From NCBI GenBank assembly GCA_904063045.1, contig CAJFCJ010000056.1, forward strand, positions 1 through 64,000: a DNA stretch of 64,000 nt. Reading direction: 5' to 3'. The notes beneath the pieces are model-generated. The model searched no databases, had not been told where the DNA came from, and was given only the letters and a program-made list of their open reading frames with translations. Position numbers and translations under genes: made by a program. The DNA is from Dimorphilus gyrociliatus. Taxonomy: Eukaryota; Animalia; Annelida. Below, one piece after another: positions 21,500 to 58,100 of this stretch; positions within the stretch are counted from its first letter, which is position 1; each line of letters starts with the position of its first letter.

Positions 21500-21770
21500 C
21501 AATAATTTGTAATAGCAGGTTGCAAAGTTAGCAAACTAATGTCAAATGTTAAAAGGGTAGAGTGCTGTCTAAGAAGGGTTGTTTCCAGTTGATCTTTCCA
21601 GTTTAAGGTAATAGAGTTAGACTATAAGAGCAAGGATGTATATACTTGTGGGTTTGTCTCCAATATACAATCACTACTTTACTGTTGGTGGTCTAGGAAC
21701 AATATGTTACAAAGTTCAACACTTGAGAAAATTAATTAATCATACTTTGGCCAAATCCTTAAAATTACAC
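21500..21770. mobile_element. Divergent LTR fragment related to the 635-bp Gypsy LTR (a similar fragment lies at ~54150-54310)
   Basis: ttgtaatagcaggttgc, ggttgtttccag, atgttacaaagttcaac shared with the LTR. Confidence 0.55.
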
Positions 21771-21869
21771 AGTATTGAGTTATTGAAGCCCTAAACTGTT
21801 TTTTTTGCTATTCGTTTTATGATTGTACTTTCCTGCTGGGGTTATAGGTAAGTACTGGTCCAAATAGAA

Positions 21870-22085
21870 CCAAATCATCAAATTTCGTAGGGGTTTGGTA
21901 ATTCTTGCAAAGTCTTTAATAAACCTTCTATAATATCCACAAAATGCAACAAAAACTGAGTAAAATATTTGCAAATACAGGCTTGTTTGCTTCTTTGATC
22001 CTAGCAATTTTCTCTATTCTGTGTCCAAGGAATTGAATTGTTTCCTGGAGAAAGTTACATTTGCTCAGCTTGATTCTAAAAAGTT
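21870..22085 (-). pseudogene. Gypsy RT/connection fragment
   Basis: IKLSKCNFLQETIQFLGH and VAFCGYYRRFIKDFARITKPL, homologous to pol at 49040-49250. Confidence 0.85.
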
Positions 22086-29359: not shown

Positions 29360-30186
29360 CTGCAGACAGAAAAAGCAAGCATAGAAAATGAGAATTGTAT
29401 TTTATGTACTCTTGGTCTCTCACACCATTCTATTACATTCACTCCCTTTTATACCTTGTTAGTGTCATTTAACTGGGTGTTTGACTGTGCTCATCTGTGT
29501 TGCCACATTCATGCCATGTTGTGCCATGTCATTATTTACCTGGTGATATAACATTAAGTTAACTAGACTGTCCCGGCTTTGGGCTAAGTCAAACTCCCTT
29601 CTTAAGTGATGCTCACATACTGACATACATTTACTGACTCACATTCACTCATAACATGTAATGTGAACAGAACGTTAATGAACAAAACATTGTTTAGTGT
29701 CATTGTGTGTGTGTCAGTGAATGCTGCTGCATCTGGCAGGTGACCTAAAGTCAGACTCCTAAATCTGGTCTGACTTGATATCAAGTCAGATCGCAAACAT
29801 AACAAAGTCAACAGCCAGATGAGTAGAATCAAACGCACACTTAAATGACAAGAGTAACTGTGTGAGGTATAAAAAAGAAAATATGTGACAGTACAGTGTG
29901 AGAGCCAAACAAACATTTAAAAATAAATTGTAACGAAATTATTACTTAATTTCGTGATACAAGTAACCATAAATCTTGTAAAGTTACAAGAAAAAAAAAC
30001 AGTTATTTGCCATGGAAAAGAAAGTACAAAGCATGACCGCAGCACAAAGACTGGAGACTATTAATAGATTCATGGGGCACACTAAAACGGGCCTGGATGA
30101 TGGAGGATATACTATGGGACTTATCAAATTGAGATGGCTACTCACCAAGGATCAACGATCCACAAGGGAAGAACATTGATGACGAT

Positions 30187-32810: not shown

Positions 32811-32896
32811 TGTCAGTGTGTGTGTGTCAGTGTGTGCGTGTGAGTCAACAAGTGTCTGTCAGTGAATGCTGCTGCATCTGGAAATATGTGACACTA

Positions 32897-33861
32897 GATA
32901 TTGCCTCTGGGGTAAATGGCACCAAACTCCTAATATGGTTACCTACAACCCCAGCAGGAGAGTACAATAAGTAATATAATATAGTAATTTCAGATATGTA
33001 AAAGAATTATTATAAAATTCCAAATATTTTCAGAGTAAGAGATACCAGTGTACTTTGTTGTATTGTAATTGTAGGAATTTCTGCTTCTTCAGAACAGTAT
33101 TCGTCCTTTCCAATCATTTATCAACTCACCAAAGTACTCAAATAAATGGAATCTTTCAAGTTCCTACACAAATAGTCTCAAGAAATGTAATTTCAGTAGA
33201 AATTAATCAACAAAAGGCTGGTATTTCATTTAAAGAAAATGTATTGAGTAAATGAGTTTCTAGTTCTAAACAACTAAGTTTAAACAAGCTCCTTGTCCTG
33301 CATACATATTACAAAAAGGATCAAAGTTTGTTGTAAGAAATGAAAATCATCTTCATAAGTTGCATTAAAATCTGGAAAATGTTCTTCAATCAAGAATGGA
33401 CTTGAAAGAAATGGCAACTGGTGACAATGGAAAAACTGTTAAAAGATGATATTATCCTAAAATTTAAAGAAGACTTGCCAGAACTAGAATCATTAAGATG
33501 AAAATCTTCTTGATATAAAGAGATAAAAGACCAAAGCATCCTAGAGATTTTGATTTTGAAATCAATCTGAATGAAATTCCAATGGATTTCTTATTAAGAG
33601 ATATATGTAAAATTTGGTTCATTGATGCAACATTTAAAGTTGTTAGAGATCCATTTTATCAAATCTTTTCAATTCAGGATTCTTGAAAAAATATGATTAA
33701 TATCAACAAGTTCCATTGGTCTATGTTCTGATGAGTAGCAAGAAGAAAAACTTTTAACCTATCTTCAAGTGAGACACAATGCCTTTGGCATGATTGCCTC
33801 GAATGGGACGAAATGTCCTAAAATGGGCCAAAAATGTCCTGGCGCCGAAAGTCCTGACCCC
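32897..33861 (+). mobile_element. Composite MULE-derived insert in the BEL 3' LTR
   Basis: KIWFIDATFKVVRDPFYQIFSI..VPLVYVLMSS (first catalytic Asp region); right TIR ending gtcctgacccc; flanks gtgacacta / gtgacagta (9 bp, 1 mismatch). Confidence 0.7.
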
Positions 33862-34439
33862 GTGACAGTACAGGTGAGAGCCAAACGAAGTTATAAATAA
33901 ATTGTAACAAAATTATTATAATAATTCGTGATACGAGTAAAATATAAATCTTATAAATTCTTTTTCTATACTTTGGTTCAATGTTATTGTCTGCTTGAAC
34001 TTCTGGGTAAACCTAATGTTGGTAATCATCTTTTAGCTGTCCATAAATTTGAATTCCCATTGAACTAAAGCCAACAATATGTAAATAATCTTCAGGTGAA
34101 CCAGAAACATCATGACATATTGATTTAGTCATTAGACTTGGATAATCCAGAACAATTGTCTAAAAATGTGGATTGCCCTGATGCAGAGACCATGGATCAG
34201 CATTATTGGAACATCAAGACTTAATGTTATAGCATCAAAAATTGTACAATTTACTATGAATAGTGTTGACTTTAGGGAATCAAGTTTTTCAGCTGTAAGA
34301 TAAGTATCTTGATCATAGAAGGTGATTTGTTTTCAATTTATGAGTACTTCATCAGGATTATGAACTGAATAACTAAACAAGGCAAAAAAATTTTACATTA
34401 ATTTTTTGAGGTGATATTATTTTTAGTAAGAATTTTTAA

Positions 34440-39129: not shown

Positions 39130-41464
39130 TTCCTCCATTTCCAAACACAAATCTATCTGAACTTGGACCAAATTATATAGCTAGAAAATGCAATTTTACA
39201 AAAATGTTCCCTGTACTTGGTATGTATACTTCATGAAATAAAAATTATACAGAGATTCATTTTAATGGAGATGATAATGAATATGAGTTTTCTGTGGAAA
39301 TTACAAGTATTAAGTATTCTTCTTCTTTTCTGCAACAATATTGCATCTCAATATTTGAAAATGGTCTAGGACCTATAAGATTCTTTTTTCCATCTGAAGG
39401 AGAATATGGTATAAATATTTGTGGACAAAAACGAAAAATTGAACATAATTGTAATTGTTTATGTTTTAAATTTTTTGAAAAAGTACCAGAAAAAAGTTTT
39501 CCTACTATTACTTCACATATTGTTAAAAGTGAAGAAAAAGCAAATTATACTTTAAAATTTCCAGATAATGGAACTAGAACTATTGGCAAACAAACACATT
39601 TCTTTAGGTTAAAATTAAGGATGGAAGATAATTTCCAATCTTATCAAGAATGTTCTAAAAATATACATTTTAAGATATTTAAAAAGATATCATGTCAATT
39701 TAAAATTGAATTAAAATGGTATGATGAAAACAATGAAGGACATGATTTATCTATGTATTCATTCTTTGTAAATAGTTATGAAGATGTTACATTCTACATC
39801 AATTTTCCATTACCAGGAATGTATAAATTTGAAATTGAAGGAAAAGAATTAAATTCCAGAAAAAATTATGAATTGATCTATAATTCTAATTTTTATGCAA
39901 TTGAATCTAATACAAATTCATTTCAATTTCCAATTGTTACTGATAAATGGAGAATTAGTGAAACTCATAAAATTCTTCAACCATTTAGAAAACTCTACTC
40001 AAATGAAAAAGTATTAATACAGATTGAAGGTTTTAAAGCTGATGAAATGATTGCCTGTTGTGTAAATGAAATTTTTCATTTTGACCTCTTTAATGATATA
40101 TGGGAATGTGAAATTGACACTGGTGAAAATTTTGGAGATTTAGTTATTAGAGCAAAAATTTATAAAAATGCAAAAATTTTTACTGAAATTTTAATTTATA
40201 AAAATTTTTAAAAATCCAATTATGAAAATGGATAAACCTGCAGTAGAGAATAGTGAAACCACTAGTGAACTGGCTGAACCTGTAATAGGGAATAGTGAAA
40301 TTAACAGTAAACTGGATAAACCTGCAATTGAGAATAGTCAAGCTATTAGTAAAAATGAAAATATAGAGGAGATAAATGCTTCACAAACAATTGATATTTC
40401 TAAAAATGAAGTATCTGATGAAAATGATTTTATTAAAGTAATGAAATATGTGCCAAATGTTCAATTTGAGACAATTGAAAATGCTACTAATATAGAAGAA
40501 ATTGGTGAAATAGATTGGTCATTAAAAATAGAAGAAGTTATCTATATCAGTGAATTTCTACCAGCTGATGACTCTGATGTTGGAGAGGATGAAACTCTTA
40601 AAATAAATGTAAGATATTTGTAAATAATGATTTATTCTCTTTTGTAAAAGGATTATTTCTTTCTAAAGGAGAATGAAAATGAAGAAGGTAAAGAAATGTC
40701 AAAAAAAATTGTAAATAATTCAGAAGAAACTGCAGGAAAGCCAGGTAATAGAAATGATGAAAAGGAAGAGAAATCACAGCAACAACATACTAATCAGGAA
40801 GATGTAGCAAAGAAGGCATTAGGTAATTAAAATTTCACATCTAGATACTGAAATTGTTAGAAATATCATTAAAAATATTGTAGATTTGAAAAAGGCATAT
40901 GAAGAAAAAGATTATAAAAAGTTAAAAGTAGCTATAGACAAAGCTTCTGTTAAACCAATAAATCCTTTATTAATTAAAGATTTATCAAAAGCTAATGAAT
41001 TAAAAGCAAATTTAGAAAAAATTTGTGGTTTGCAAAACAGGATTTTAAAACTTGATGCAAAATGTATTGCAGAATTAAATCAGTATAATCAACCACCTGC
41101 TGTTGTACATCTGGTTATAAAATCAACATTATTGATTTTATCAATTGATGAAGGACAAACTGATGAATGGAAAGAATGTCAAGTTTTTATTAAATATGCA
41201 TGCTCTTATTCTATTTTAAAGAAAATTAAAGCTCTTAAAATCTTAACTGTAGATCCAGCAATCATTCTCAGAGCTGAACAAATAATTTGTGAATTAAATC
41301 TGCAAGAAGTCAAGGAGGCAAGTGCAGGTGCAGCAGCATTCTATTTATGGTGTAAAGGTAACATTGACATCTATAAAAAGATTAACAAAGAAGAAATAGG
41401 AAAATCACAGCCAGCAACCAGAAAAATACAAAAAAATATCTTTCTATCATCTTTTCATCATTAA
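39130..41464 (+). CDS. Kyphoscoliosis-peptidase/hillarin-like gene (C-terminal Ig-like repeats, acidic linker, dynein-stalk-like tail); N-terminus not seen
   Basis: 39294-40211: VTFYINFPLPGMYKFEI..FP..W..ILQP..WECEIDTG. 40886-41464: KCIAELNQYNQPPAVVHLVIKSTLLIL..W..ASAGAAAFYLWC. Confidence 0.6.
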
Positions 41465-42316: not shown

Positions 42317-42943
42317 TTTGTAAATCTAAATATGATAAACATTTTTTTTATCTAATAGAATTCAATTCATGTACATTTGTTTTGATAAGAACATGTTCTG
42401 GAATAAATCCCCTACATGATGAATATTTCTGGTTTAGAAGACTAGAAATGCACTCTTAACAACTGATAACATGATTGAAGGGATGTATTGAAGGGTCTGT
42501 TAACTTATTGAAGTAAATTTTGCACTTTTAACATGTTTAACATTTTGAAATTCTCTTAATTCAGCATCTGATCAGTTGCCCAAATCTGTATTTAGCTAAG
42601 AAATTTTATGAAATGTGTGGACAAAATTTTATTTATCAATAAAATAGGCATAGGAGAATAATTATTTTTAATGCAATAAATGAGTTATTAGTAATGATTA
42701 CTAAAGTTATTAACTTACTACTATACAGGTCTACATAATTTGAGTGTTTTTGATAATTGTCAATCAAATAGCTATAATTAGTTCTATAAATAGTTCTTTC
42801 ACTAGTTTGCCAATGATTTAGTATAGAAAATAAGAATACATACTTAGGTTAGTTCTATACAATAACACCAATTAATGATTATTTATAAAGATAAATTAAT
42901 TATCCAATCATCAAATTTTTCCATGTTTCACATTTGAGTATAT

Positions 42944-43578
42944 TGTACTGCTCTTGCTGGCAAAATCTATGCGTTTGCAAGTTATAACAATACTGGTTCT
43001 ACTCGAACCTTTAAACAAATGTTTAAATTAAAATGGTTTATTCGCAATAATAATACTTAAGCAAGTAACAATATGAGAGTTCAATAGCAGAGTAGATAGT
43101 TTGTAATAGCAGGTTGCCAAATTACCAAACTGTCTTCCAATGTTGAGGAGTAGATGGATGGTTCCAGTGGAGGTTGTTTCCAGATGATTTTCCCAGGTCC
43201 TTGGGTCCAGATGGAAGCTGCATGCCAAATGAGAATAATGAGGATTTATATACTTTGAGGTTTGTCTCTGACATCCAATCATCACTTTACAGTTGCCAAA
43301 ATGTGTAGTTCATATTTATCTTTAGTAACAGGATGTTACAAGGTTCAACATTTAGGAAGGTTAATTGAATTATAACTTGGCCACACCCTAGGCAAGTTAA
43401 TTAAATTATAACTTGGCCAAACCTTTATTGGTAATTAAAGATGAGCCTTCAAGCTGACTAATCAGACTTATGTTTGGCCAATGTTATAGCATTTTCTTGC
43501 GTAGGTTTTAAGATGTACATGTATATGTTGCATAAAATAATAGAGTTCAAGGATGTAAAATATAACCAAAGTTGTACA
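42944..43578 (-). repeat. 3' LTR
   Basis: Direct repeat of 51625-52259. Confidence 0.97.
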
Positions 43579-43595
43579 ACTTCCCCCTTCTTTGT
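43579..43595 (-). promoter_or_regulatory. Polypurine tract
   Basis: Minus strand caaagaagggggaagt immediately before the 3' LTR. Confidence 0.85.
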
Positions 43596-43609
43596 GAAGA
43601 TGAGTCCCT

Positions 43610-46135
43610 TCATCTTGATTTAATGAGAATTACAGGTGGTTGTTCTTCTTCATTAGTTTGATGTTGACTAAAGCTACAACTTTGTTTCATTAGTTTTGGG
43701 TTTTCAGGAGAGTTATCTGTGCTCTCACTTGGGGTAGCAATTTCTTCTCTTTGTTTTCTTCTTCCAATAATATAGTTGAAAATGATGATACATACCATTG
43801 ACACTACAATACTCAAACAAATATTTCGTATGATAACATAAAGTGTTTTCCCAGGTTTATAGTACCAACTATGGAAAAACTGTTTAATTCCAGATAAATT
43901 GGGTACAATGCCATTTTTCTCTGCAACAGTGACCATGTTATCATACCTTGCCTGCTTCTGTTCCAGTGAACTGATAACTTGCTTAATTTTTGAGTGCTGG
44001 TATGCAATATCCTTCTTTACCCCATGGTGGAGTAGATCAGCTAATCTGGCAATTTCAATTTTTGGTTCAGAAAGGTGATTGTGGATATGTAACTGCATGG
44101 ATTTTGCAGACACAGTGTGAAATCTGCATCCTCTTTCTGAATAATACACATATGTTTTGTCTTTCATTGGTTGGTTTCTTATAGGATTTAATGGGTTGTG
44201 AGTTGTTTTGTAGAATAACTTGTTAGACTTACACTCATTATAGGTAATCTCTTCAGGATTGACTTGCTGTAAAACATGAGTAACTGGTTCTACTTGGAAA
44301 AGCAGGTTGTTCATGGTGACAAGTAAAAATTGAGAACATTTGTTATTCTTTTTTATCATGCTTAAGTCACAAACTACTTCTGTTGAGGCTATTGGTGAAC
44401 ATTGTTTAATTATAGCTAATTCTCCCATCTGACTACTGTGCATTCCCAACTCATTTGTTAACACTGTGGTCAATTGAGGATCCAAATTTGCTAGTAATGC
44501 CATCATTCTGCTTCTTTGAACAAATTGATTGCAGAGAAGACTTGACAGCTGTTGGGTAAACTTTTTTAAATTCTTAAAATTTGAATCAATACCATGTAGT
44601 AAGGTAGATGTTTGGGCAGCTTCTCTCATTTCCAATGGGAATTTGTGGTATGGGTTTTTACTTATCTTATGTTTCAGTTTTGCTTCCTTCTTCATCTGCT
44701 TTTTAGCCATTCTCATGTGTAGAGTAAAATAAATTCCTTCATAGGTAATCTTAAATTCTCTGGCTGGTGGTCCTTTATACCATATGCCCAATGTTGGTAA
44801 TACCTTCTTTTTGATTCTTTTCTCACTGTATACATATTTTGAAATCGTGACAGATTGTCTTGTTGCCCTTGTCCAATTGACTGCTTGCAGCATTTCTTGG
44901 ATATAATAGTTATCCAGCTCCCAGTAAGATGGACTAATGGGTTGTTGTAGATGATATATCACAACTTCCTTGAGTGTGCCTTTATTTCTCATTAGTTTAT
45001 ACTTTGTGTTTGTTTCTCTGTACCATTGGTTAAGACTTGGTAAGGGGTTGTTTCGCTTGTATAGTATAATTTGTTCTTTAACTTTATTGGGATAGTTTAA
45101 TAGTCGTTTTTCTTCATTTTTGCCAATCTTCTGATATTGTAGCAAATTGTATAGGTGTTCCTTGCTTGTTTCCTGTATTAAACTCTGTTCCTCCAGTGGT
45201 ACTAGTACTTTTGTTCCAGGACCACCAATTCCATCAATAAACTTATCTTGATAAGGGATGTCCAGAATAGAATACCCTGGACAAGAATAGTGACCAGCAA
45301 ATTTGATACAACTAATTCTGTTGCTAATTTTTATCCATGGTGATTGTTGCCCAAGTGTGTAATTATTCTTGAGGTTCCTAAAGACAATAATTGCTCTTCT
45401 GTTTCACAATAGGACTGCCCTGGTAAACAATCTTCCAGGTAGTCCAGATTAGTTGTAATTTTCATATTAGGAGGTTGCCAATATGCTTTGCCAAACTGGA
45501 TAATTGTGGTGTATTCCAGCACCTTGGTCGTTGTTGGCCATGTGTAGGCAGCAGGAAACTGATCTTGGTGGATCCAAGTGTTTCTTTTCACCATTAAAGG
45601 TTTTCCTTGAAAAGATCGTTTGTCTTTTATCATCTGTCTGCATTGATCATGAGTTACTTTGATAACTGAGTTAACAATCCTCCTCTTCTTTGCTCCAAAG
45701 AAATAGTAAGTGTAAAAATTAGTTCTTAGATACACTTGACATTTTACTGCTCTTGTTTCAATTTCTTCCAAGTTCAATTCATAGATATCAGCTGTAATTG
45801 TCTTGGTTTCTTGTGATTCTATATTACAAGTTGGCTCATCTGCTAGATCAAATGCCTGGCTTGGTAGTTGGTTAGAACAAAAGTATAACGGTGGTTTAAA
45901 TGTTAAGGTAATGTTTTGCACTTGTAACATGGGCACCTTGGTAGGATGGTTTTGGGACTGTTATTGAGTGGATGCAGCCACAGATCACCATTACAGTCAT
46001 CACTAGTGGAAGCCACAACATCTGTTTCATGTTAGCTCTTCCTGTGTTGGCTATAGTTGAATGGTTGAAAATTTTGTGTTGTTGTTCCACTCTGATAGTT
46101 ATTCCATCTTCTAACTCTATATATTGTGGTTCCAC
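43610..46135 (-). CDS. env: Env-like class III fusion glycoprotein, broken by ~3 frameshifts (45896-46135, 45331-45936, ~45145-45330, 43610-45145)
   Basis: Signal peptide MLWLPLVMTVMVICG; VKC..YFFG..DQC..YTW; LLCNQ..LANLDP..MGELAIIKQC; TM ICLSIVVSMVCIIIFNYIIG; cytoplasmic tail. Confidence 0.75.
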
Positions 46136-46149
46136 TTCTTGTTGGGAAT

Positions 46150-46611
46150 CTAATTGTTCAGAGATGATTTAGTCTCATCTAAAAATATGACTGACTCATT
46201 GTCTGTGTCACTTGTATTTTCTTTCTCATCTTGGGATGAATCTACCACTATGAGGGACTCATTATCTGAATGGGTTATGTCAATAATTTCACCTTCAATA
46301 ATTATTGACTCATTATCCGAATGGGTTATATCAATAATTTCGCTTTCAATAATTATTGACTCATCGTCTGAACTAGATATTTCATCTTCTCTATCAGAGA
46401 TAATGTTTGCCTCTGAATCTGTATTTTGATCCAGTTCATTATTTGTTTCTGTGTCATCACTTTCAGATGAGCTTGAAGGTTCATTGAGACTGTAATTACT
46501 GTCTGTTTTGAAAGTATTGCTTGTGTCATAACCAGTATCAGAATTAGTAACTTCCATCTCTGAGTCATCACTATCTGAACTTTCTGATGAAGAGTCATGC
46601 TGTCCCATCAT
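46150..46611 (-). CDS. Acidic Ser-rich accessory ORF with tandem SIM-like motifs
   Basis: 153 aa; IIIESE, IIDITHSDNE (x2), IIIEGE, LIVVDSSQDE, VIFLDE; 51-bp tandem repeat ~46255-46360. Confidence 0.75.
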   Translation of the reverse strand: MMGQHDSSSESSDSDDSEMEVTNSDTGYDTSNTFKTDSNYSLNEPSSSSESDDTETNNELDQNTDSEANIISDREDEISSSDDESIIIESEIIDITHSDNESIIIEGEIIDITHSDNESLIVVDSSQDEKENTSDTDNESVIFLDETKSSLNN

Positions 46612-46643
46612 GGCTATAGTGACTTTGTTTAGTTGAGGTTGCC

Positions 46644-47310
46644 TTATTCTTTCAGCCAGGTTCCTTTCCTTCTATCAAATTTGAGAGAACACTGTTTAGC
46701 TTCAAAATTGAGGTTTGCTCCCACAGTTTGTAGGAAATCACAACCAAGTATTATTGCTATGTCTAGATTTTCCATAACTATAAATTCTTGTTCCATACTT
46801 TCTCCAGCAAATTGGATATTCAGCTTTACGCTTCCTTTTTGCTTTAAAGCTTTCCCATCAGCTGAAGTTATAATTGGTAAGCCAATTGTTTCTTTATCCA
46901 TAATTGTAACATCCATTAACTTGATTTCTTTTTCAGTAATAAAGGATCTCAATGCTCCTGTGTCACACAAGGCAATGACTTCTTGGCCTTTTTGATTCTT
47001 CAAACGGAATTGGAAGTCATTTCTTCCTTCTACCTGAGAAAGATATTGGAGGTGTGTTATTTCCTTCTCCACAAGGTGAAAGATTGTTGTTGCTTCTTTC
47101 CCTGTTTCCAACTTATTAGATTCATTGGCTAGTCTTAATCTGCTACCATGTACCAACTTGCATGTATTATCATCCATTTGTATTTCATATATCCACTTTT
47201 GATGATTGACTTTTGTTATTCGGTATGGGCCTAACCATTTTAAAGAAGGGATTTTTGTTATTGCAATTCTTGCAGCATCATTTCTTAAGAATACTTCATC
47301 ATCAACCTCA
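46644..47310 (-). CDS. Integrase C-terminal GPY/F module followed in frame by a second retropepsin domain
   Basis: FEVDDEVFLR..KWLGPYRI..VHGSRLRLA then ALCDTGALRSFI..SADG..IILGCDFLQ; separated from the main pol ORF by one frameshift near 47310. Confidence 0.85.
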
Positions 47311-50300
47311 AATATTTTGGAAGATTGAGATTTCTATTCTTTCTTTCCCTATATTGTTCTTTTGCCATGATGGATTTACAGAAGGCTGTAGCTCTTAACT
47401 GTACTAATTGCTGCTGGTGATTGAATACAAATAGTACATTTGTTTCAGGAGAGGTAGTATGCATTGTTACATCAATCAGTGTTCTTGTGCTGGTGCCAAA
47501 AAGAAGTTCCTGGGGTGGTAGTCTTGTACTTCCTACAGGTGATTGATTCAAAAATGCTTGAATCAAGGGTAGGTTTGCAACCCAGTTATGCTGATTTTCT
47601 TCCACCACTAATTTATTGATTTCCTTCCTCACTTCTCTATTTCTTCGTTCAACTAGTCCATTGCTCTGGCTTCTATAAGCTGTTGTTTGGATTTTCTCAA
47701 TACCTAATACCTTCATAAACTCTTTAAAAGCTTTACCAACAAAGTTTCTTCCTTGATCTGTCAACATTTGTTTTGGAATTCCAAAAATGGGAAAAAATCT
47801 GTTGAAAAGAAGGTTTGCAATTTCTTTACTGGTTTGCTGTTTGAGTGCATATAAAACTGTGTATCTACTGAAATGATCCACTATCACAAGTATGAATCTG
47901 TATGACTTAACCATGGGTAAGGGTCCCATTATATCCATGGCTACCAACTCCATTGGTGATGCAGGGTGAAAGGTTTCTACCAAAGGGTATACTCTACTCC
48001 TACCATTCATTTGTTCACACAAAGTGCAATCCTTTATTGAATTCTCAATCATAATCTTTAATTTTGGGTGCCAAAAGGTCTTTGTAATTATTTGTAATGT
48101 CATTCTGGGTCCATGGTGATTGTGAATTTTATTTTTATGGAATTTAGGGAGCAGAGTTAGCATCAAATGGTCAGGTAAAACCAGAATGTTTCTTTCTTCA
48201 AGGATAATCCAGATCATTTCCTTGTGAACAAACATCTCCATTATGAAAGGTGTAAAAGTTCCAAAATAAGGAATAGGTAGCTGACCATCCAATGTTAAAT
48301 ATTCTTTAATTGATTTTAAATTCACATCTTTTTCTTGCTCTGACTGTAAGTCAACAGAAGACAAATCAATTTTCTCTTCACTGTTATCACTGGTAGCTAC
48401 AAAAGTTAACTCTGGTGTATGTTCATACTGTTCCATTTTAACTGAAATAGAGGGAGAATTCTCCTTTTTGATCTTTCCATGAATTAGCTCTTCAAATGTT
48501 ACTTTCCTTGGGGGTGTATATTCTTCTAATCTTGTTAATGCATCTGCTCTATTTTTTCGTCCTGTCACATAGTTAATTGTAAATTTTAAATCCATTAAAG
48601 CCATGACCCATTTTGCTGTGCTGACATTCAATTTGTTTTGCTTAAATGTTTGTACTAGACTCTGATGGTCAGTATATAAAAAGAATGGCTTGTCTTGAAG
48701 GTAATGTAAAAATTTCTTTACAACCCAGTAAACACCAAATGCTTCCTTTTGATAGGCTGCATATTTCATTTGATTATTGTTGAATTGTTTTGAAGCATAG
48801 GCAATGGGTTTCATTGTTTTCTTCCCATTCTCATCTACATAAACTTGTTCAAGAACTCCTCCTACAGCTACATTCGATGCATCTGTTGTTAAGTGAAAAT
48901 CTTTAGCAAAATCAGGTAGTTGTAATACAGGAGGGTTAACTACTGCATCTCTCAACTTGAAAAATGATTGCTTGGCTTCCTCAGTCCATTGCAATTTATC
49001 CTTTTTCCCATGTAGTTTCATTAACATATACAGAGGTTTAGCTACTCTTGCAAAATCTTGTATAAATTTTCTGTAATAGCCACAAAATGCAACAAAGCTT
49101 AGTAGTGAATTTGCAAACACTGGTGGCTGTAAATTATATAATTTATCTGTCTTGGACTTATCTGTTTCAATCCCCTTTTCTGATACAATGTGTCCCAAGA
49201 ATTGAACTTGTTCTTTCAAAAACACACATTTACTTAGTTTAATCTTAAAATTGTACTTTTGAATCTGTTGAAGAATGGTCTCCAATGCTTCCCAATGTTG
49301 GTCCAGCGACTTGGTAAATATTATTATGTCATCAAGGTAGTTTAGGCACAAATGCTTTACATCCTTTAGCACAAATGAATTCATTACATAACTAAAATGA
49401 GGAGGGGCATTGGTTAATCCAAAAGGCATCTTAATAAATTCAAACAAGCCAAAAGGTGTAATAAATGCTGTTTTAGACCTATCTTCTTTCTTGATGTTAA
49501 TGTGGTGGTATGCACTTGTCAAATCCATTGTAGAAAAGAATTTATTTCCTCCTCCCAAATGGTCAAAAAGATCATCTTGATTTGGCAGTGGATACTTGTT
49601 TTTAACTGTCATTTTGTTTAGTTTTCTATAATCTACACACATTCGTAGACTACCTTCCTTCTTTCTTACGAAAACAATTGGTGAAGCCCAATTGCTCTTG
49701 CTTGGTTGAATAACTTTGCTTTTTACCAATTCAGCTATCTGTTGCTTACATTCTTCTTGTTTTTGAGGAGGCATTCTATATGGCCTTTGTCTATATGGTG
49801 TTGAACCTGGTTCAAGAGTTATTTCCAAGGGTGGTACCTCTGGATTGCCAATATCAAATCTGTCTTCTGCAATAGTTTCTTTATATTTTGCCAGAATTTG
49901 GGTAACTTTGTTCTTCATCTCGGGATTTTCTTGTTCAATTGTTGTCTGAAGGGTATGTATTTGACTCTCATTCTTTTTCATAATAAGAGGAACTGGGTAA
50001 AACCCTTTGAAAGATAAGTGTTGTGTTCCAACAGGGTAATTCTTTTCTGTACCTGGCTGGAGTATAATCTGTCTCTTGCCAAAGTCAAGGGTAGCTCCAT
50101 TTTGTTGTAGAAAGTCACACCCAATAATACATTGTTGTGTAATGATTTTGTTGATCAGAAAGCGTTGTTTAATAATCTTTTCATTAAAATAAAGTCTGAG
50201 AATGATTTCTCCACATATCTCGATGCTATTTCCTGAAGCATCTCTAGCATTTTTCACAGTTTGTTCTGGGAAGGATGCTTTTCCTTGAACTTGTCTTAAT

Positions 50301-50494
50301 ACCTTTTTTGAAATGAAAGATCTGTCACTACCAGAGTCTATCAAGGCATCAAACTTAAAACCAGTATTAGTTTCAAATTGTCCAATAAATGTTGAAGCAT
50401 TTCGCTCAGATTGTTTGCTTTGTAACAGCTGACAAGTGGATTCGTCACTATCTGAAAAACAGAGAATATCTTGAACTTCGTCGTTTTCTGACAT
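47285..50494 (-). CDS. pol: Gypsy Pol (protease, RT, RNase H, integrase)
   Basis: LIDSGSDRSFI; RMCVDYRKLN; YLDD (49328-49339); TDASNVAVGGVL..TDHQSL; HHGPR..C..C, MDIMGP, TDQGRNF, NGLVER. Confidence 0.97.
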   Translation of the reverse strand: MSENDEVQDILCFSDSDESTCQLLQSKQSERNASTFIGQFETNTGFKFDALIDSGSDRSFISKKVLRQVQGKASFPEQTVKNARDASGNSIEICGEIILRLYFNEKIIKQRFLINKIITQQCIIGCDFLQQNGATLDFGKRQIILQPGTEKNYPVGTQHLSFKGFYPVPLIMKKNESQIHTLQTTIEQENPEMKNKVTQILAKYKETIAEDRFDIGNPEVPPLEITLEPGSTPYRQRPYRMPPQKQEECKQQIAELVKSKVIQPSKSNWASPIVFVRKKEGSLRMCVDYRKLNKMTVKNKYPLPNQDDLFDHLGGGNKFFSTMDLTSAYHHINIKKEDRSKTAFITPFGLFEFIKMPFGLTNAPPHFSYVMNSFVLKDVKHLCLNYLDDIIIFTKSLDQHWEALETILQQIQKYNFKIKLSKCVFLKEQVQFLGHIVSEKGIETDKSKTDKLYNLQPPVFANSLLSFVAFCGYYRKFIQDFARVAKPLYMLMKLHGKKDKLQWTEEAKQSFFKLRDAVVNPPVLQLPDFAKDFHLTTDASNVAVGGVLEQVYVDENGKKTMKPIAYASKQFNNNQMKYAAYQKEAFGVYWVVKKFLHYLQDKPFFLYTDHQSLVQTFKQNKLNVSTAKWVMALMDLKFTINYVTGRKNRADALTRLEEYTPPRKVTFEELIHGKIKKENSPSISVKMEQYEHTPELTFVATSDNSEEKIDLSSVDLQSEQEKDVNLKSIKEYLTLDGQLPIPYFGTFTPFIMEMFVHKEMIWIILEERNILVLPDHLMLTLLPKFHKNKIHNHHGPRMTLQIITKTFWHPKLKIMIENSIKDCTLCEQMNGRSRVYPLVETFHPASPMELVAMDIMGPLPMVKSYRFILVIVDHFSRYTVLYALKQQTSKEIANLLFNRFFPIFGIPKQMLTDQGRNFVGKAFKEFMKVLGIEKIQTTAYRSQSNGLVERRNREVRKEINKLVVEENQHNWVANLPLIQAFLNQSPVGSTRLPPQELLFGTSTRTLIDVTMHTTSPETNVLFVFNHQQQLVQLRATAFCKSIMAKEQYRERKNRNLNLPKYLRLMMKYS

Positions 50495-50541
50495 GCTTTC
50501 ATTGTCTAATGTTTCTAATTTTTGTAGCTTAGGTTCCTCTT

Positions 50542-51699
50542 TCAGTATCGTCTTTGCTGGTTGATTTTTCTTATAATACCTATTTGTTGTAGTTGGTGCA
50601 TACTTTTGGACTTTTGGCTTGAAAACTTTTCTTTAGTAGCATTTTTGTTGTCAGGTACATGCTTTCTATTCCAGAAATTTGGGGTTTCTGTAGAAGCATC
50701 TTTTCTGATTACCTGGGTCTTTTTGGTCTCTTTTCTTTGTTGAGTTTCCAATTTTGACACCATTGTGATCGGTTTTCTTTGAGTTAGTTTTAATGAAGTT
50801 TCTGCTTGCTTAGCAGCCTCATATAGTTCTGCCAATGTTTGACATTTAGGATGTAAGGTGTACACTAAATGTAGAATATCCTGTTGTAATCCTCTTTGTA
50901 AAACTTCCATCAGTTTTATTTCTTTCATAGTTGCAAGCAATTGTGGTTCCATTGGTCTAGGTGGAGAAAACCTCTTTATCAATTTCTTTGCTCTATTAAC
51001 AAACTGAACCACACTTTCGCCATTCATTTGCTTTAAGTTAAGCAATTTCTCCTGATACTCCAAAGGATCTAGATCAAATTCGTCATGGAGGGCTTTCCAT
51101 ATTTCCTCCACAGTAGGCTCTCCATCCAGAGCCAACACCAAATCCTTTGCAGGACCAGTTAAATAATCTAAAAGATTTGCTTTCACAACATCTTCTCCTA
51201 TCCAACCATAAGCATAACATGCCTGATTAAAGTCTTCTTTGAATTTTGAACACTCCTTGCTTCCATCATACAACTTGAGAATAGTTCTTTGAGGGCGGTC
51301 CCAAGCAGCCCTTAATGCTTGAATTACTGTTGTGATATCAACATTTGGGTTCTGTGCTGGGTGATGTGTTCCATCTCCATGATCTGTTGGAATTGTGATT
51401 CGATTTCTTTTCATTTCACTCACCAATCTATCATAGTCTTCAATTAGTCTTTGTTGCCTTTCTGACATTCCTGCTGGCTGAATTGTAATTGTTGGAGTTG
51501 CTGGGGTTGAAGGGTTAGAGTCTGTAACTGCCCCAGTGGCGTTTCCATTTCCTCCTTCTGCCATATTTACTTTCTCAAAACTTTTGAATAAACCAAAAGA
51601 ATATCCTGTCGACTGCGCCAAATTTGTACTGCTCTTGCTGGCAAAATCTATGCGTTTGCAAGTTATAACAATACTGGTTCTACTCGAACCTTTAAACAA
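50542..51699 (-). CDS. gag: Gypsy Gag (probable start MAEGG inside the ORF; the first codons overlap the LTR)
   Basis: YDGS..FKEDF..YGW..LTGPAK..LKQMNGESVVQFVNR..QRGLQ retrotransposon gag pattern. Confidence 0.9.
   Translation of the reverse strand: MFKGSSRTSIVITCKRIDFASKSSTNLAQSTGYSFGLFKSFEKVNMAEGGNGNATGAVTDSNPSTPATPTITIQPAGMSERQQRLIEDYDRLVSEMKRNRITIPTDHGDGTHHPAQNPNVDITTVIQALRAAWDRPQRTILKLYDGSKECSKFKEDFNQACYAYGWIGEDVVKANLLDYLTGPAKDLVLALDGEPTVEEIWKALHDEFDLDPLEYQEKLLNLKQMNGESVVQFVNRAKKLIKRFSPPRPMEPQLLATMKEIKLMEVLQRGLQQDILHLVYTLHPKCQTLAELYEAAKQAETSLKLTQRKPITMVSKLETQQRKETKKTQVIRKDASTETPNFWNRKHVPDNKNATKEKFSSQKSKSMHQLQQIGIIRKINQQRRY
51603..51620 (-). promoter_or_regulatory. Primer binding site, tRNA-Ser
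   Basis: Minus strand TGGCGCAGTCGACAGGAT, complementary to the tRNA-Ser 3' end (..ATCCTGCCGACTGCGCCA-type). Confidence 0.8.
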
Positions 51700-52259
51700 A
51701 TGTTTAAATTAAAATGGTTTATTCGCAATAATAATACTTAAGCAAGTAACAATATGAGAGTTCGATAGCAGAGTAGATAGTTTGTAAAAGCAGGTTGCCA
51801 AATTACCAAACTGTCTTCTAATGTTGAGGAGTAGATGGATGGTTCCAGTGGAGGTTGTTTCCAGATGATTTTCCCAGGTCCTTGGGTCCAGATGGAAGCT
51901 GCATGCCAAATGAGAATAATGAGGATTTATATACTTTGAGGTTTGTCTCTGACATCCAATCATCACTTTACAGTTGCCGAAATGTGTAGTTCATATTTAT
52001 CTTTAGTAACAGGATGTTACAAGGTTCAACATTTAGGAAGGTTAATTGAATTATAACTTGGCCACACCCTAGGCAAGTTAATTAAATTATAACTTGGCCA
52101 AACCTTTATTGGTAATTAAAGATGAGCCTTCAAGCTGACTAATCAGACTTATGTTTGGCCAATGTTATAGCATTTTCTTGCGTAGGTTTTAAGATGTACA
52201 TGTATATGTTGCATAAAATAATAGAGTTCAAGCATGTAAAATATAACCAAAGTTGTACA
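51625..52259 (-). repeat. 5' LTR
   Basis: Direct repeat of 42944-43578. Confidence 0.97.
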
Positions 52260-53699
52260 ATAGGAGCGGCCATTTTTTTATATTCAATTTATGGTCTAAT
52301 TTATAGTTATCCTTCTAAGAAGTTTAAAATTAAGAAAAAACAAGATCAGCGACAATGGAAACATTTTAAAAGATTCTAAAACGCTTGGTAAGAATATTAG
52401 AACTGAAAGTATGCTGTTTGGTGTTACAACAATATATCTACTCAGTTGGTTTCCAGCTTCATTTTCAATTGCTGATAATTTGTCTTCAAATATTATACTC
52501 TTTCACATATATCTTGTTAATAATTCTACAAATTTTTTTATATATTTTCTATTTCAAAAGACATTTTGTGAAAATTTGGCAAAGTTTTTTTTTTGTAAAA
52601 ATTTCAGGCATTCATCATCATCATTATCATCATCATCCTAAAACTTAAGCCTAACTAACTGTAAATAAAAGTAAGTAAACATCAAAAATTTGGTATTTGG
52701 CAATATTTTTAAAGTTTTAACCCATCTCTCTCATTTCTGGAAAGAGTAAGAATTCATTTCTCGTTGTATTCTTTGTAAAAATCTTAGATTCTAATAAACT
52801 AAATGTTGTTAATATATTTTTTTTTATAAGCTTAATTATTTTAATTAGCCTCCATTAACTAAATTGTCTATTTGGCAGTTTCCATGGAAATATCTACTAA
52901 TTTCCAAAATGGGTCTTCTTCCTCACTCATTTACCAATTCAGTAAGATCTCTTTCAATGTGTTTGATGACTTAAACTAATCCATTGCAAAATGTCAACAA
53001 ATACACTTTCCATTTGTGTATTTAAGCATAAATTTTTAGTTTCAATTTTGGAACAATTTTTAAGCATATTTCCAAGTTTCTTTGATTGAATATCATTTAG
53101 ACTTTAATAACTGAAATCAATATCTTTTACAGTTTACTTTTTATGTAAAGATTTATGAAGGCAAACAGTTAGATGATACTTTAAAAGATGATTGTTATGC
53201 CTGAATCCATTGTTTACTGGAGGAGAATTCTTAAAAAATCTGACCTATAAAAAATTAATCAGAAAGGTTAAAAAATTTTTCACTTTTGTTTTTATTCATT
53301 TTTGAAAAATGTTTTTGCAATTCAACAAATAAGATCTGATGACCCTATTAGATGGTTTGTATTGGGGTCTGCCATATTTGTATGTTGGGTAAGGGTTAGG
53401 TAAAAATCCCGAGTTACACACTCAATGAGCACTACCCCAGAAAGTTTTGTTCTCACTCTAAGATCTTTACTGTATGATTCTAGGAGCAGATACTCCTCTT
53501 GTCTCTTTTCACTAGGAAGTCAATTTTCCCAGTAGAATTGCTAGGAGGTTGACTGCACTATGACTGTCTCTCCATATTTCGAGGTCTTATTACCTCTTTG
53601 TTAGGCAATTTGGTTGCTTGATCTTAGGACAATTTTTTGCTACAATCTGACAATTAATTCACAATTTTAACTTCAGTTGGGGGTTGGTAAGGGCTTAAC

Positions 53700-53895: not shown

Positions 53896-55183
53896 TTCAG
53901 ACAGTAAAATTATCATAGATACCATTCAAGTGTGATAAAACACATATGGGAAAGAGAGGCAAGTTTTTAGGATAGCATTTTAAATGTGCAACCTTTTTAT
54001 ACATAAGAATGTATAAGAAACCAAAAAGCGCCCTCTAGTAGATTTTTATAAATATTATATAGTATAGTTCCAAAAATCTTTTCATAGTAGTAATCAACTT
54101 TTTTAAATTCAAGTAAACCCAAACACTAAAAGCAAGAGTTAGAGATTGTGATAGAGATAGATGATTGGAATGAAAATACAGGAGCTTATATACTCTTTGG
54201 TGAGTTGATGATATCCAATCATTGGTTTGAAGTTGGTGAATGCTCTAGTTCATGTTTATATTTAGTAATAGGATGTTACAAAGTCCACTAGACATAGTCC
54301 TTATCTTTTTTGGAAGCAAATTGAATTATAACTAGTCTAAAAGTGACTGTGTTGTGATTTGTGATGGGATGTATCTATCTTACTTAAAATCAATTACTGT
54401 TTTTTAAGTGTTGAACAATCAAGGTGTCCAAGAGAAACATTTGAGAATTTGAGTAAAATGACTTTCTGGAGAAGAATGTCCTGATTTTGTAGAATATGAA
54501 TATTAGATAAGAAATTTCTTGGGTTACTACTTGTACGGGATAATAGAAGAGTAAAAACCTGACATACAGTTTAAACTGAACTATATATTCACACAGAATG
54601 TGGGCGTGGCAATATAGTAAAGAACTCTTATCATTCGAAGCGTATATTTATTTTGTATCAATTTTTAAACTTTCTTACACTTGCTTCCCTCTGTAGGCAT
54701 TTTCTAAGAATATTTCCAAAGTTTACTATGCTATTACTTGTTTGGTCTGTTTGCGAAGCAGTAAGACAATTGGCTTCAATGTAAAATTTCTTATTCTGAA
54801 AGAAAAACAAAAACAACGAAAGTAGTCTTTTTTGTCAGATAATTAAAAAAAAAAAATCTAAAGCAAAGCTTAAAAAATTCACTTTAAGAAAGATATTTTT
54901 AATACCAAAATCTTCAACTAGAATTAGAGAGAATTTGTTTGCCTATGCAACAGCCGTAATAACATGTCTATATAGACAATATATTGATATTATTGACTCG
55001 GCAACTTTTTCAACGCACAAACTACTCAAGTTCTCCAGCAGACAATTCGGTAGAATAAAATTTTCCTTAAAGTTATTAGAAAATAAAATTACTAAGAGAA
55101 TATAGAAAAGAAAACTGGTATTGAGTTGTTGTTGATGTTCCAAGGACACTTACTATTGCTTGTTAATTTAAATGTCATATTTT

Positions 55184-58100
55184 CTAGATGTTTTTTCCTG
55201 AAATAATACAATTAATAGCATTTATAGTAAAAAAAAAAAAAACCTTGTTAATTTGTTCATACTCAGCTTCTCGAATTTTGATTTGTTGTTTTTTATAAAA
55301 CATAATTATTTCGGAAAAAGTATAAACAATTGGATTACACAGAGAGTTCAATGGCAGAAAAATAACAACAATTAAACTATAAATATCTTGATTGATATTC
55401 ATATTAAATACAACTGATGAAAAACCTATAATATGGTATAAACGTCAGAAGTGACGTCATTTTATTGTTGTAGATATTATATGTAGTCGATGAATGAGTA
55501 GCGAGCGTAGGTTATGGCTAAATTCACCAACTTTACTCGATATACGTGTTAAAGATTTAAGGTATATACTAGTAAATATAGCAGTAATAATAAGTAATAA
55601 CGTGTCAAGATAATAAGAGGTAGTGAAAATACGGTTAGGTTTTAAATATGTGTAATGTAAAGTAATTATAAAATAACATAAAGGGAATTTGGCTGACCGC
55701 CAAATTTAGGCGATGTACCCGTCGACTACATTATATAATACCTAGAAAAGAAATTGGAAGCCAACAAGAAATATTTGTTAGAACTATAACCAATGCAGTT
55801 GTCTGGACTTTTTTTGTTACTTTTCCAGAACAGTTATTCTTTATCATTTTACTACTTTTATACAATGATAAGAGTAGTATTAAATAAATAATTAATATTA
55901 ATATCGATATCAGAAACATTAATATGCTATAAAGAAAAAATGACCATTGCCAGCCCCTAGTCTTTATAATTCCTATTTGAATATTTATACAGATTGGTAA
56001 CAACTGGTAATAATTCTAGAAAATAGGCAACAAAATTATTTTTAATTGTTTAGGGTTCATTTCAGTTTTGTTTGTTTTATCTTGTTAAGTTTTTACCTTG
56101 AATGTATAGAGTGGTATCAATGAGAATAATAGAGCAAAGGATAGTATTATAATGGATGTCATTGTGGTTATTTTGTTTGTAAAGTACAAACTCATTGGAA
56201 ACTTAACGACTAAATATCTTTCAATTGTTATTATTAATAGATTGAACGATGAAAAAAACTATTAGATCTGAACAGGAAGTAAACTTGGTTGATTTTGGTT
56301 GGCAACTTTTAATGTAGGACTGAAATTTCCATACAAAACAGCATAGATTAAAATATTCACTTTTCACAATTTCAATTGATTTAATATGTTTTGATAAATG
56401 GATTAAATACTTTTCAGGTAAAATACTATTCAAAAAGTATAAATATTTCAAATTTGTCGCGTGTAGAAAAACATCTTGTTCAATTTTTATAAAATTACAA
56501 TCATTTATTGTCAAATTTATCAAATTTTTTAAATTTGAAAAATACTGTCTCTTCAAAATATTTAATGAAACATTTTTCAGTGTTAAAGAGACTAATTTTG
56601 GAAAAATAGTAAACTCTAGATTAGCTACATCAATAATTTTGATATGCTCAAGTTGAAAATACTGTAACAGAGAAAAGCAACGTTTTTTATCGAAATGATA
56701 AGAGAAATTTAAAAACATTTGAGAAAGATGAATATCGAATAAATTTGGAAATTCTTCACTTATTGGAAAGTTGAGTATACAATTTATAAAAGATATTGAT
56801 TGTATTTGATAAAATTTCTTCGATGATTTTGACTTTTCTTTTGATATGATTGCGGAATTTGACAATAACCTTTTAAATAAGGGATTATTTTGATTCTTTA
56901 GAGTTATATCTTTGGAACAATATATTGAAAAATTCTCAATGACAGGTTCGCAGTTAAGAAATTTATTTTCATAAGGACAATTCATTTCGTCGCTACCATC
57001 TAAACAGTCGAGTTCACCATCGCAGATCTTATTTATTTCAACAATGCCTTTTGTTTCTTTACACCTGAAGAAACTTTCCAATGAATGTTGACCTAAATTG
57101 AAAAAGAGTGAATAAACTAGGATTGATAGGATTTCACACTCTAGCAATTTACTGCAATTATCTTCATCATCACCCTTTCTGCAATGGAATACACGGTCGC
57201 AAACTAATACAATGGAAATACAGTAATTGTCATCATTGCACAAATACTCTCCATGAGCACACATTCTCTTTCTGCAATTTGAAAGATATTTGAATGGAGG
57301 GTGTAGATTTGGTTTGTATTGATTTTTGATGTTTTTAAAAAGTTTACATTTAGTATTGAAAGATCTTATAAGTAAAACTCTACAAAAGTCTTCATTGATT
57401 GGTTGATTAGAAAATTCAAATTAATCATTAAACAAAAAATTGTACTGTTAATTCTCGACTGATTTCCAAATGATTGAGTTGATTTTCTAACTGCATAGGC
57501 CAAATCTGAACATTTATCAGTTTCATCACTCCCATCTTCACAATGTCTAAATCCATCACAAATTTCATTAAAATTAATATTCTTATTCTTATCACAAATC
57601 ATAATGCAATCTGTTTTTTATTTTGATAAACGTTTCATTTTATTATCAAAATACTTTTTGAAAAATTTTTGACAAACTCGAATGAGATTGCAAATCAGAT
57701 TTGTCAATACAATGTATTTTACCAACATGGGTTTGTACGCATTGTTTACTTTTGCATTTACTATAAATCTCAAAAATTCAAAATTTTAAAAAACAATAAA
57801 TGACAAATGTTTGATTTTGATATTTAATAGTTACAAGTTTGACTGATCACTACAATCTGGATAATCTGCTTTATAAAAATATTCAATTAATTCCTATAGT
57901 TCACGATTTTGTGGAGTTGTTTCATTAAAAAAAAAAAAAAAATTTTTCACCGCAATTTTCTTTGTCTAATCCATTTTTACAATCATTTTTAAAATTACAG
58001 AGAAAACGATATAGAATCGTTTCGTTATGGTCGCAATAGAATAATTTTTCTTGTCTACAATTTTCCTCATCTTCACCAGAATTGCAATCGTTATCTCTGT

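Follow-up and report, generated by a model that had tools for sequence, protein, structure and literature searches.

We analyzed a 64,000-nt stretch of the Dimorphilus gyrociliatus genome (GenBank assembly GCA_904063045.1, contig CAJFCJ010000056.1, positions 1–64,000, forward strand; hereafter the window), which holds a young Ty3/gypsy-type long terminal repeat (LTR) retrotransposon with an env-like gene. Between pol and the env-like gene, this element carries a hyper-acidic, Ser-rich open reading frame (ORF) of 153 codons, here called the acidic ORF, whose predicted product ends in a tandem array of short aliphatic cores resembling SUMO-interacting motifs (SIMs). Judged from its sequence, this ORF is genuine coding DNA belonging to the element, and the reading that we favor, tentatively, is that its product is a multivalent SUMO reader. 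Immediately upstream, pol ends in a second retropepsin placed after the integrase, which is noteworthy independently of any reading that involves SUMO.

The acidic ORF has the properties of a coding sequence

An earlier note, made from the letters of this DNA, had described an intact 153-aa ORF encoded by a retrotransposon between pol and env, and both the ORF and its place in the element were confirmed (Table 1). The predicted product, of ~17 kDa and with a net charge of about -41, contains 45 Asp and Glu residues (29%), 46 Ser and Thr (30%), 17 Asn and Gln, 26 Ile, Leu and Val, and 4 Lys and Arg. The frame is open over 163 codons, and none of 3000 dinucleotide shuffles reached even 153. A codon model with gag and pol as its training set gave +0.10 bit/codon for the annotated frame and negative scores for all five others; pieces of the env-like gene scored +0.16 to +0.18 bit/codon. 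GC content within the acidic ORF drops from codon position 1 to position 2 to position 3, as it does in gag and pol. The antisense strand and a second sense frame across the same stretch also hold ORFs of 81–91 codons. A single-sequence AlphaFold (AF2) model of the product gave no fold (mean predicted local distance difference test score, pLDDT, 48.7) and placed a strand of 3–5 residues on every core of the array. We consider it very likely that the acidic ORF was translated in an active progenitor of this copy. Counted from its second ATG, the ORF opens with M-G-x-x-x-S (46591–46608, minus strand), which resembles an N-myristoylation signal and is odd in a protein of such charge.

A four-unit array carries SIM-like cores

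The last 72 residues of the product are encoded by four in-phase tandem units, all of a length that is a multiple of three. Each unit reads D-[D/N]-E-S, then a core of 3–4 residues drawn from I, L, V and F, then D or E, and units 1 and 2 hold an additional second core, IIDI. The 11-mer that encodes the start of the unit, GAYRATGAGTC, occurs four times in the window, always within the array, with 0.1 occurrences expected. The 51-bp tandem duplication reported in the earlier note was found again as units 1 and 2, the youngest pair, which differ at four bases in three codons; three of these four differences fall at third positions, and one amino acid is changed. Units 3 and 4 are older and differ from units 1 and 2 at 9–14 of the first 30 bases, yet they retain a hydrophobic tetrad at the same place, with conservative replacements and with the fewest changes at second codon positions. 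This retention of the cores within the array would provide thin evidence for conservation of the acidic ORF.

Six hydrophobic cores lie between residues 85 and 144 (III, IIDI, III, IIDI, LIVV and VIFL), each adjoining Asp, Glu or Ser. The earlier note had counted six to seven; the seventh candidate, NIIS, has only two hydrophobic residues. The SIM consensus has been given as hXhh or hhXh, where h is I, V or L (PMC8616421), and in a looser wording as three hydrophobic residues of four (PMC12751080), with acidic or phosphorylatable residues as flanks. The fit to the consensus claimed in that note therefore holds in its strict form for four cores (IIDI at residues 92 and 109, LIVV at 120 and VIFL at 141) and in the looser wording only for the two III cores. 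Every core has on one side, within 7 residues, at least four D, E, S or T, including at least two D or E, and no K or R. Consistent with a CK2-type context, 22 of the 46 Ser and Thr residues in the acidic ORF (48%) lie in S/T-x-x-D/E, compared with 13% in the background.

The cores are spaced 6–21 residues apart, giving four strict or six loose cores within 60 residues. Shuffling the protein at constant composition produced a mean of 1.3 cores, and six were reached in none of 5000 shuffles. Core density is ~40-fold above that of related Pols (0.07 cores per 100 aa in 121 proteins totaling 167,000 aa). In any 65-residue span, the background maximum was two cores among related Pols and two to three among the 523 stop-free stretches of the window, and the core density of the acidic ORF is unique among those 523 stretches.

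A possible SUMO-reader function

If the product is a multivalent SUMO reader, translation of the acidic ORF would begin at its own ATG-ATG, with a spliced subgenomic RNA comparable to the env message as the simplest template, and would give a small, intrinsically disordered protein that is probably heavily phosphorylated by CK2. Its four tandem units would offer aliphatic beta-strand cores beside Asp, Glu and Ser, which is the grammar of a SIM, and the four strict and two looser cores could bind poly- or multi-SUMOylated partners by avidity, in the manner of RNF4 and of engineered SUMO-traps. The bound product might compete with SIM-bearing silencing effectors, or it might tether proteins of the element to SUMO-rich chromatin. 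The earlier note had likewise proposed an anti-silencing SUMO sponge or a targeting adaptor; its observations on the sequence are supported, and these roles are purely an inference.

Such a scheme draws on what is known of SUMO. CK2 phosphorylation of SIM flanks increases affinity, and the SUMO ligase Su(var)2-10, with SIM-bearing effectors, mediates piRNA (PIWI-interacting RNA)-guided silencing of transposons. Clustered SIMs confer avidity for poly-SUMO (PMC3631770; PMC3901395), and animal viruses encode SIM proteins (PMC12751080). By analogy with these systems, a role as decoy or tether would be coherent, and for the acidic ORF we infer translation, phosphorylation, SUMO binding and effects on silencing or targeting. 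A more specific proposal, which we regard as quite unlikely, is that the retroelement encodes its own multivalent SUMO reader either as a decoy that soaks up the SUMO chains of piRNA/SetDB1 silencing, or as the tail of an integrase-fused second retropepsin, which would then be a SUMO-directed protease or integration tether. Ubiquitin-directed retropepsin-like proteases are an analogue for a SUMO-directed one; to our knowledge, neither a SUMO-directed protease nor such an integration tether is known for any transposon.

Pol ends in a second retropepsin

The 177-codon ORF upstream of the acidic ORF contains an apparently intact second retropepsin domain, which shares 30% identity with the element's own first protease (PR). 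The frame of this ORF is open further upstream, where it reads a GPY/F-type C-terminal module of integrase (IN), and this module aligns with related Pols exactly where the alignment of the main pol ORF ends. This collinearity indicates that pol is a single gene, broken in this copy by one frame change and ending in a second protease fused after integrase. The label "pol tail" given to the upstream frame in the earlier note is thus borne out: the frame is Pol, comprising the IN C-terminal module and the second protease, and it stops at 46644.

Pfam matches in pol include RVT_1 (1.5e-33), RT_RNaseH (6.6e-29), rve (7e-13) and Integrase_H2C2 (1e-8). Although 7008 relatives of Pol were found, the best were just 30–40% identical, indicating that the element's family is poorly represented in public protein sets. 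Protease-like matches among 120 related Pols lay before reverse transcriptase (RT) in 34 of 36 cases and after IN in none, and a protease fused after integrase was not met in literature searches; on this comparison, a retropepsin in that position is an unusual Pol architecture. Pfam searches of pol, the pol tail and the acidic ORF gave no match to a chromodomain. At the N-terminus of pol, ahead of the first PR (50440–50494, minus strand), an acidic and Ser-containing stretch adjoins a hydrophobic patch, a combination that is SIM-like only loosely.

The element carries an env-like gene

The two 637-bp LTRs have TG..CA termini and differ at 5 positions without indels (99.2% identity). The element has the LTR ends, primer-binding site (PBS), polypurine tract (PPT) and PR-RT-RNase H-IN order seen in Ty3/gypsy elements that carry env, and is an env-carrying Ty3/gypsy element, "errantivirus-like" in the operational sense of PMC13524379. 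In this copy, gag is intact, pol has one frameshift, and the env-like gene has at least two frameshifts and no obligatory stop.

The env-like gene would encode a protein with a signal-peptide-like N-terminus and a Cys-rich ectodomain, and with 17 Cys and four N-glycosylation sequons in all; long helices are predicted for it, and a membrane anchor at the C-terminal end is followed by a tail of ~50 aa. Its initiator is likely the Met at 46030, which precedes the signal-peptide-like segment. A relative encoded on a 2430-nt contig of a European Nucleotide Archive (ENA) assembly (P0123) aligns without gaps over 316 C-terminal residues, including the anchor, with 66% identity and 85% similarity, and was the only env-like relative among 5.8 billion protein clusters. 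At 66% identity, this relative indicates that a sister lineage of the element exists elsewhere and that the C-terminal half of Env is conserved in it.

We found no match between the env-like gene and Pfam models of the F or gB type, and no sequence match in the PDB. A weak match to Phlebo_G2_C (E 0.027) is confined to the anchor region, and the secondary structure is predicted to be rich in helices; an envelope of the phlebovirus type was rejected on these grounds. The AF2 model of the env-like gene reached a pLDDT of 39.9; the helix-rich prediction leans towards a class I fusogen.

Relatives of the acidic ORF

The acidic ORF gave no Pfam match and no PDB sequence match, and a word search was blank. 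A HMMER search of 1.84 billion representatives of all lengths returned two matches with E-values of about 5e-4, one to a repeat in a receptor kinase ectodomain and one to an unrelated 83-aa repeat protein; both are unrelated repeat proteins, and the matches were rejected as compositional. The acidic ORF itself and any near-identical Pol were absent from the protein collections, so the host's own copies of the element have apparently not been called as proteins. The earlier note knew of no described equivalent, and our literature searches agree with it in that they met no transposon-encoded SIM array, which is weak evidence.

Borders of the acidic ORF and alternative explanations

From gag to env, each reading frame overlaps the next, and the transitions from gag to pol, from pol to the pol tail and from the pol tail to the acidic ORF are all -1 steps with overlapping open frames. 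No canonical slippery heptamer was found in the gag/pol overlap. The earlier note had placed the acidic ORF in tight packing between a pol stop at 46644 and an env start at 46135. The former stands, with a spacer of 32 nt, whereas the latter is a mechanical GTG. Elsewhere the packing of the element is tight, and other long spacers are lacking.

The AG-ending 10-mer ACTATAGCCA lies directly before the acidic ATG (46611–46620, minus strand) and again 18 nt before the env Met (46048–46057, minus strand), and these are its only exact copies in the window. Pairs of identical 10-mers are no commoner in the window (24) than in shuffles (25.5), and only the positions of this pair are suggestive; we therefore set it aside as evidence for a splice signal or insertion footprint. 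The pair may reflect a common acceptor or regulatory motif, or it may be fortuitous. Donor-like sites near the start of gag (51420–51575, minus strand), namely GTAAAT immediately before the gag ATG and GTGAGT ~140 nt into gag, would be compatible with subgenomic RNAs.

On sequence, this one copy is compatible with a separate gene, with a C-terminal tail of Pol and with a leader of Env. It is somewhat unlikely, though the strongest of the alternatives, that the acidic stretch is the tail of Pol after the second retropepsin, severed in this copy by a frame change. Such a tail would lie at the usual site of integrase targeting modules and would either tether the integration complex to chromatin or SUMO, or serve the second protease as a regulatory or pseudo-substrate tail. 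In its favor, the upstream ORF can be shown to continue Pol past one frame change, the step into the acidic frame is of the same -1 kind as the two before it, the copy has further frame changes, and Ty3/gypsy elements that carry env can have additions at the C-terminus of IN, for example chromodomains (PMC13524379). The acidic frame is, moreover, open for 20 codons before its ATG, overlapping the end of the protease frame by a few codons. However, these 20 codons are neither acidic nor Ser-rich, and at the ATG-ATG the composition shifts sharply; the second ATG lies in a good initiation context (A at -3, G at +4); the retropepsin domain is complete ahead of its stop; and reading by eye revealed no canonical slippery heptamer. 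The composition break, the initiation context and the complete protease would favor a separate gene, as would the stop of the acidic ORF, which falls exactly at the end of unit 4. At 0.8% LTR divergence, a handful of post-insertion indels would be expected in 8 kb. The non-canonical frame changes are all in the 3' 3.7 kb of the element, with none in the 5' 4.2 kb; this confinement hints that some of them are natural gene borders. The borders of the acidic ORF may likewise be natural gene borders, or further frameshifts. The end at unit 4 also argues against a cytosolic N-terminal leader of the Env precursor, like the long Env leader peptides of some retroviruses, split off by a frame change, which we consider very improbable. 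The env frame stays open on the upstream side of the signal-peptide Met, reaches into the end of the acidic ORF and is itself acidic there; nevertheless, a good Met with a signal-peptide-like segment lies ~120 nt downstream, and yet another frame change would be required.

Two further alternatives accept or deny a function independently of these borders. The product could be a real, CK2-phosphorylated acidic disordered protein or segment whose partner is not SUMO, which we judge unlikely. The coding signals are the same for such a protein as for a SUMO reader, and the SIM consensus is loose. The array lies directly after the protease domain, and retropepsins bind extended hydrophobic strands, so the cores could serve as retropepsin cleavage or decoy sites. 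Other roles would be those of an acidic-cluster trafficking or assembly chaperone for Env or Gag, of a histone or nucleic-acid mimic, or of a regulator of genomic RNA export or expression like CERV, a phospho-regulated, non-env accessory protein that an invertebrate Ty3/gypsy element encodes on a spliced RNA (PMC10309623). By contrast, the protein searches turned up nothing similar to CERV or to other proteins, a basic or RNA-binding segment is lacking (4 K/R in 153 aa), and on reading the sequence none of the four aromatic residues forms an LC3-interacting region (LIR; an aromatic core position 1, then x-x-[L/I/V]). A repeated aliphatic tetrad with an acidic and Ser-containing flank at short spacing is most specifically the pattern of a SIM. 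Less probable again is a non-functional, low-complexity spacer between pol and env, expanded by slippage and open by chance, with the motifs as by-products of an AT-rich repeat of ATT, GAT, GAA and TCA. The orphan status of the ORF, its tandem repeats, the 81–91-codon ORFs in the antisense and second sense frames, the single copy of a decaying element and the AF2 model without a fold all suit such a spacer; the open length unmatched in 3000 shuffles, the element-like codon usage in the annotated frame only, the in-phase unit lengths, the sparing of second codon positions with hydrophobic replacements in the cores, and the lack of other long spacers argue against it.

Several observations weigh against a multivalent SUMO reader. 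The cores belong to one four-unit repeat array and were multiplied by tandem duplication, and therefore are not the independent evidence that the earlier count of them suggested. The SIM consensus is permissive, and AT-rich codons of the kind listed above make peptides rich in I, D, E and S cheap. The acidic ORF is an orphan in all protein collections searched. The copy is decaying, given the frame changes in pol (one) and the env-like gene (at least two), and the acidic frame, which overlaps both neighboring frames, may not be an independent gene. Pyrimidine tracts are poor at the candidate splice acceptors, and the 10-mer found ahead of both ATGs is only weakly significant.

Relation to known systems

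A SUMO reader encoded by the acidic ORF would combine features that are already known separately: LTR elements with extra ORFs, viral proteins with SIMs, and poly-SIM readers. Clustered-SIM regions, among them the N-terminal part of the ubiquitin ligase RNF4 and engineered SUMO-traps, resemble the array in their aliphatic four-residue cores, acidic or phosphorylatable flanks, spacing of a few to ~20 residues and disordered setting, for which avidity towards SUMO chains would be expected (PMC12751080; PMC3901395; PMC3631770). Unlike RNF4 and the SUMO-traps, the acidic ORF has no RING or other domain, shows no homology, consists in part of recent tandem units and is encoded by a retroelement, and its binding is a prediction. 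SIM-bearing proteins of animal DNA viruses (ICP0 of herpes simplex virus 1, HSV-1; K-bZIP and LANA of Kaposi's sarcoma-associated herpesvirus, KSHV; BGLF4 of Epstein-Barr virus, EBV; PMC12751080) are likewise encoded by a parasite that would read host SUMO, possibly to escape chromatin repression. By contrast, the viral proteins are large and multi-domain with one or a few SIMs, whereas the product of the acidic ORF is as a whole a small, acidic protein predicted to be disordered, belongs to a Ty3/gypsy element and returned no similarity to them.

Among retroelements, a parallel is CERV of the C. elegans element Cer1 (PMC10309623), also an extra, non-env protein encoded 3' of pol in an invertebrate Ty3/gypsy element. 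CERV is made from a spliced RNA, is phospho-regulated and acts in export of genomic RNA; no protein search of the acidic ORF returned a match to it, and splicing is here a model only. Integrase chromodomains of chromoviruses and some env-carrying metazoan elements (PMC13524379) lie directly downstream of integrase, as the acidic ORF does in the order of the element, and a poly-SIM tail could similarly steer integration. The acidic ORF differs from these modules in that no chromodomain was detected and that a retropepsin and a frame change intervene. Additional ORFs described in LTR elements are mostly recognizable captured domains or ORFs conserved throughout a family, whereas the acidic ORF is an orphan low-complexity frame. 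It has in common with those of bdelloid rotifers (PMC5408684) and with the aORFs of plants (PMC7264820) that it is an extra frame beyond gag-pol. The element as a whole corresponds to env-carrying metazoan Ty3/gypsy elements (PMC13524379) in its succession of LTR, PBS, gag, pol (PR-RT-RH-IN), env-like gene with signal peptide and anchor, PPT and LTR; it departs from them in an env without a Pfam F or gB match, in the additional protease that follows IN and in the additional acidic frame ahead of env.

In animals, the transcriptional silencing of transposons depends centrally on SUMO, with the SUMO ligase Su(var)2-10 recruiting SIM-bearing effectors. Should the array prove to be conserved in the family and to bind SUMO, it would represent a transposon device for counter-defense or targeting of a new type, and a compact natural poly-SIM protein for study. 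If the frame is specific to this copy or not expressed, the finding shrinks to a low-complexity spacer in a decaying element.

Features of the window

The coordinates of the element, its parts and other annotated features are collected in Table 1.

Table 1. Annotated features of the 64,000-nt window (positions counted from the first base of the window)
Feature	Position	Strand	Remarks
Ty3/gypsy-type LTR retrotransposon with env-like gene, 9.3 kb	42943..52260	-	637-bp direct repeats; genes in the order gag, pol, acidic ORF, env-like, each on the minus strand
5' LTR	51624..52260	-	TG..CA termini
Primer-binding-site-like sequence	51605..51620	-	begins TGG, a few bases past the 5' LTR; read from sequence
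gag, intact	50542..51564	-	ORF counted from first Met; weak PNMA/Ty3-gag-like Pfam match, E 2e-4
pol, one gene with 1 frame change in this copy	46644..50494	-	PR (DSG), RT, RNase H, IN zinc finger, IN core, IN C-terminal module, second retropepsin
Second retropepsin domain, apparently intact	46680..46991	-	DTG ... ILGCDFL; in frame after IN C-terminal module; Pfam RVP_2 2.6e-7, RVP 7e-6
Acidic ORF, 153 codons, hyper-acidic, Ser-rich, predicted to be disordered	46150..46611	-	start ATG-ATG; ATG at 46611, stop 46150-46152
C-terminal array of four in-phase tandem units	46153..46368	-	units of 51, 51, 63 and 51 nt; last 72 residues
Youngest 51-bp tandem duplication (units 1 and 2)	46256..46357	-	92-93% identity
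env-like gene, one gene	43610..46030	-	at least 2 frame changes, no obligatory in-frame stop
Polypurine tract adjoining 3' LTR	43580..43593	-	read from sequence
3' LTR	42943..43579	-	
ORF, 347 codons, FLYWCH zinc finger domain	18208-19251	+	
Remains of a related family of elements	21502-22080 and 54169-54287		LTR-like stretches (66-74% identity to the element's LTR) and short pol fragment (46-77% aa identity)

The window is AT-rich (~28% GC), and scans of it with Rfam and for tRNA genes were empty. It holds no second copy of the element, just the related pieces, namely the short pol fragment and the LTR-like stretches. On the plus strand, the block at 30000–34000 reaches 42% GC with a strong A-skew and contains a 478-codon ORF with a BEL/Pao-type gag domain (DUF1759) and more ORFs; it is probably another retroelement. 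The window also contains gene pieces of animal type, with a FLYWCH zinc finger, a KY-like immunoglobulin (Ig) domain, and low-density lipoprotein (LDL)-receptor class A and leucine-rich repeats. The KY-like Ig-like domain is in an ORF within 39294–40623 (plus strand), followed by an ORF with three copies of a 42-nt tandem repeat (40225–40353); these ORFs probably represent a host gene. The LDL-receptor class A and leucine-rich repeats lie in a 347-codon ORF at 56221–57264 (minus strand), which is probably an exon of a host receptor gene.

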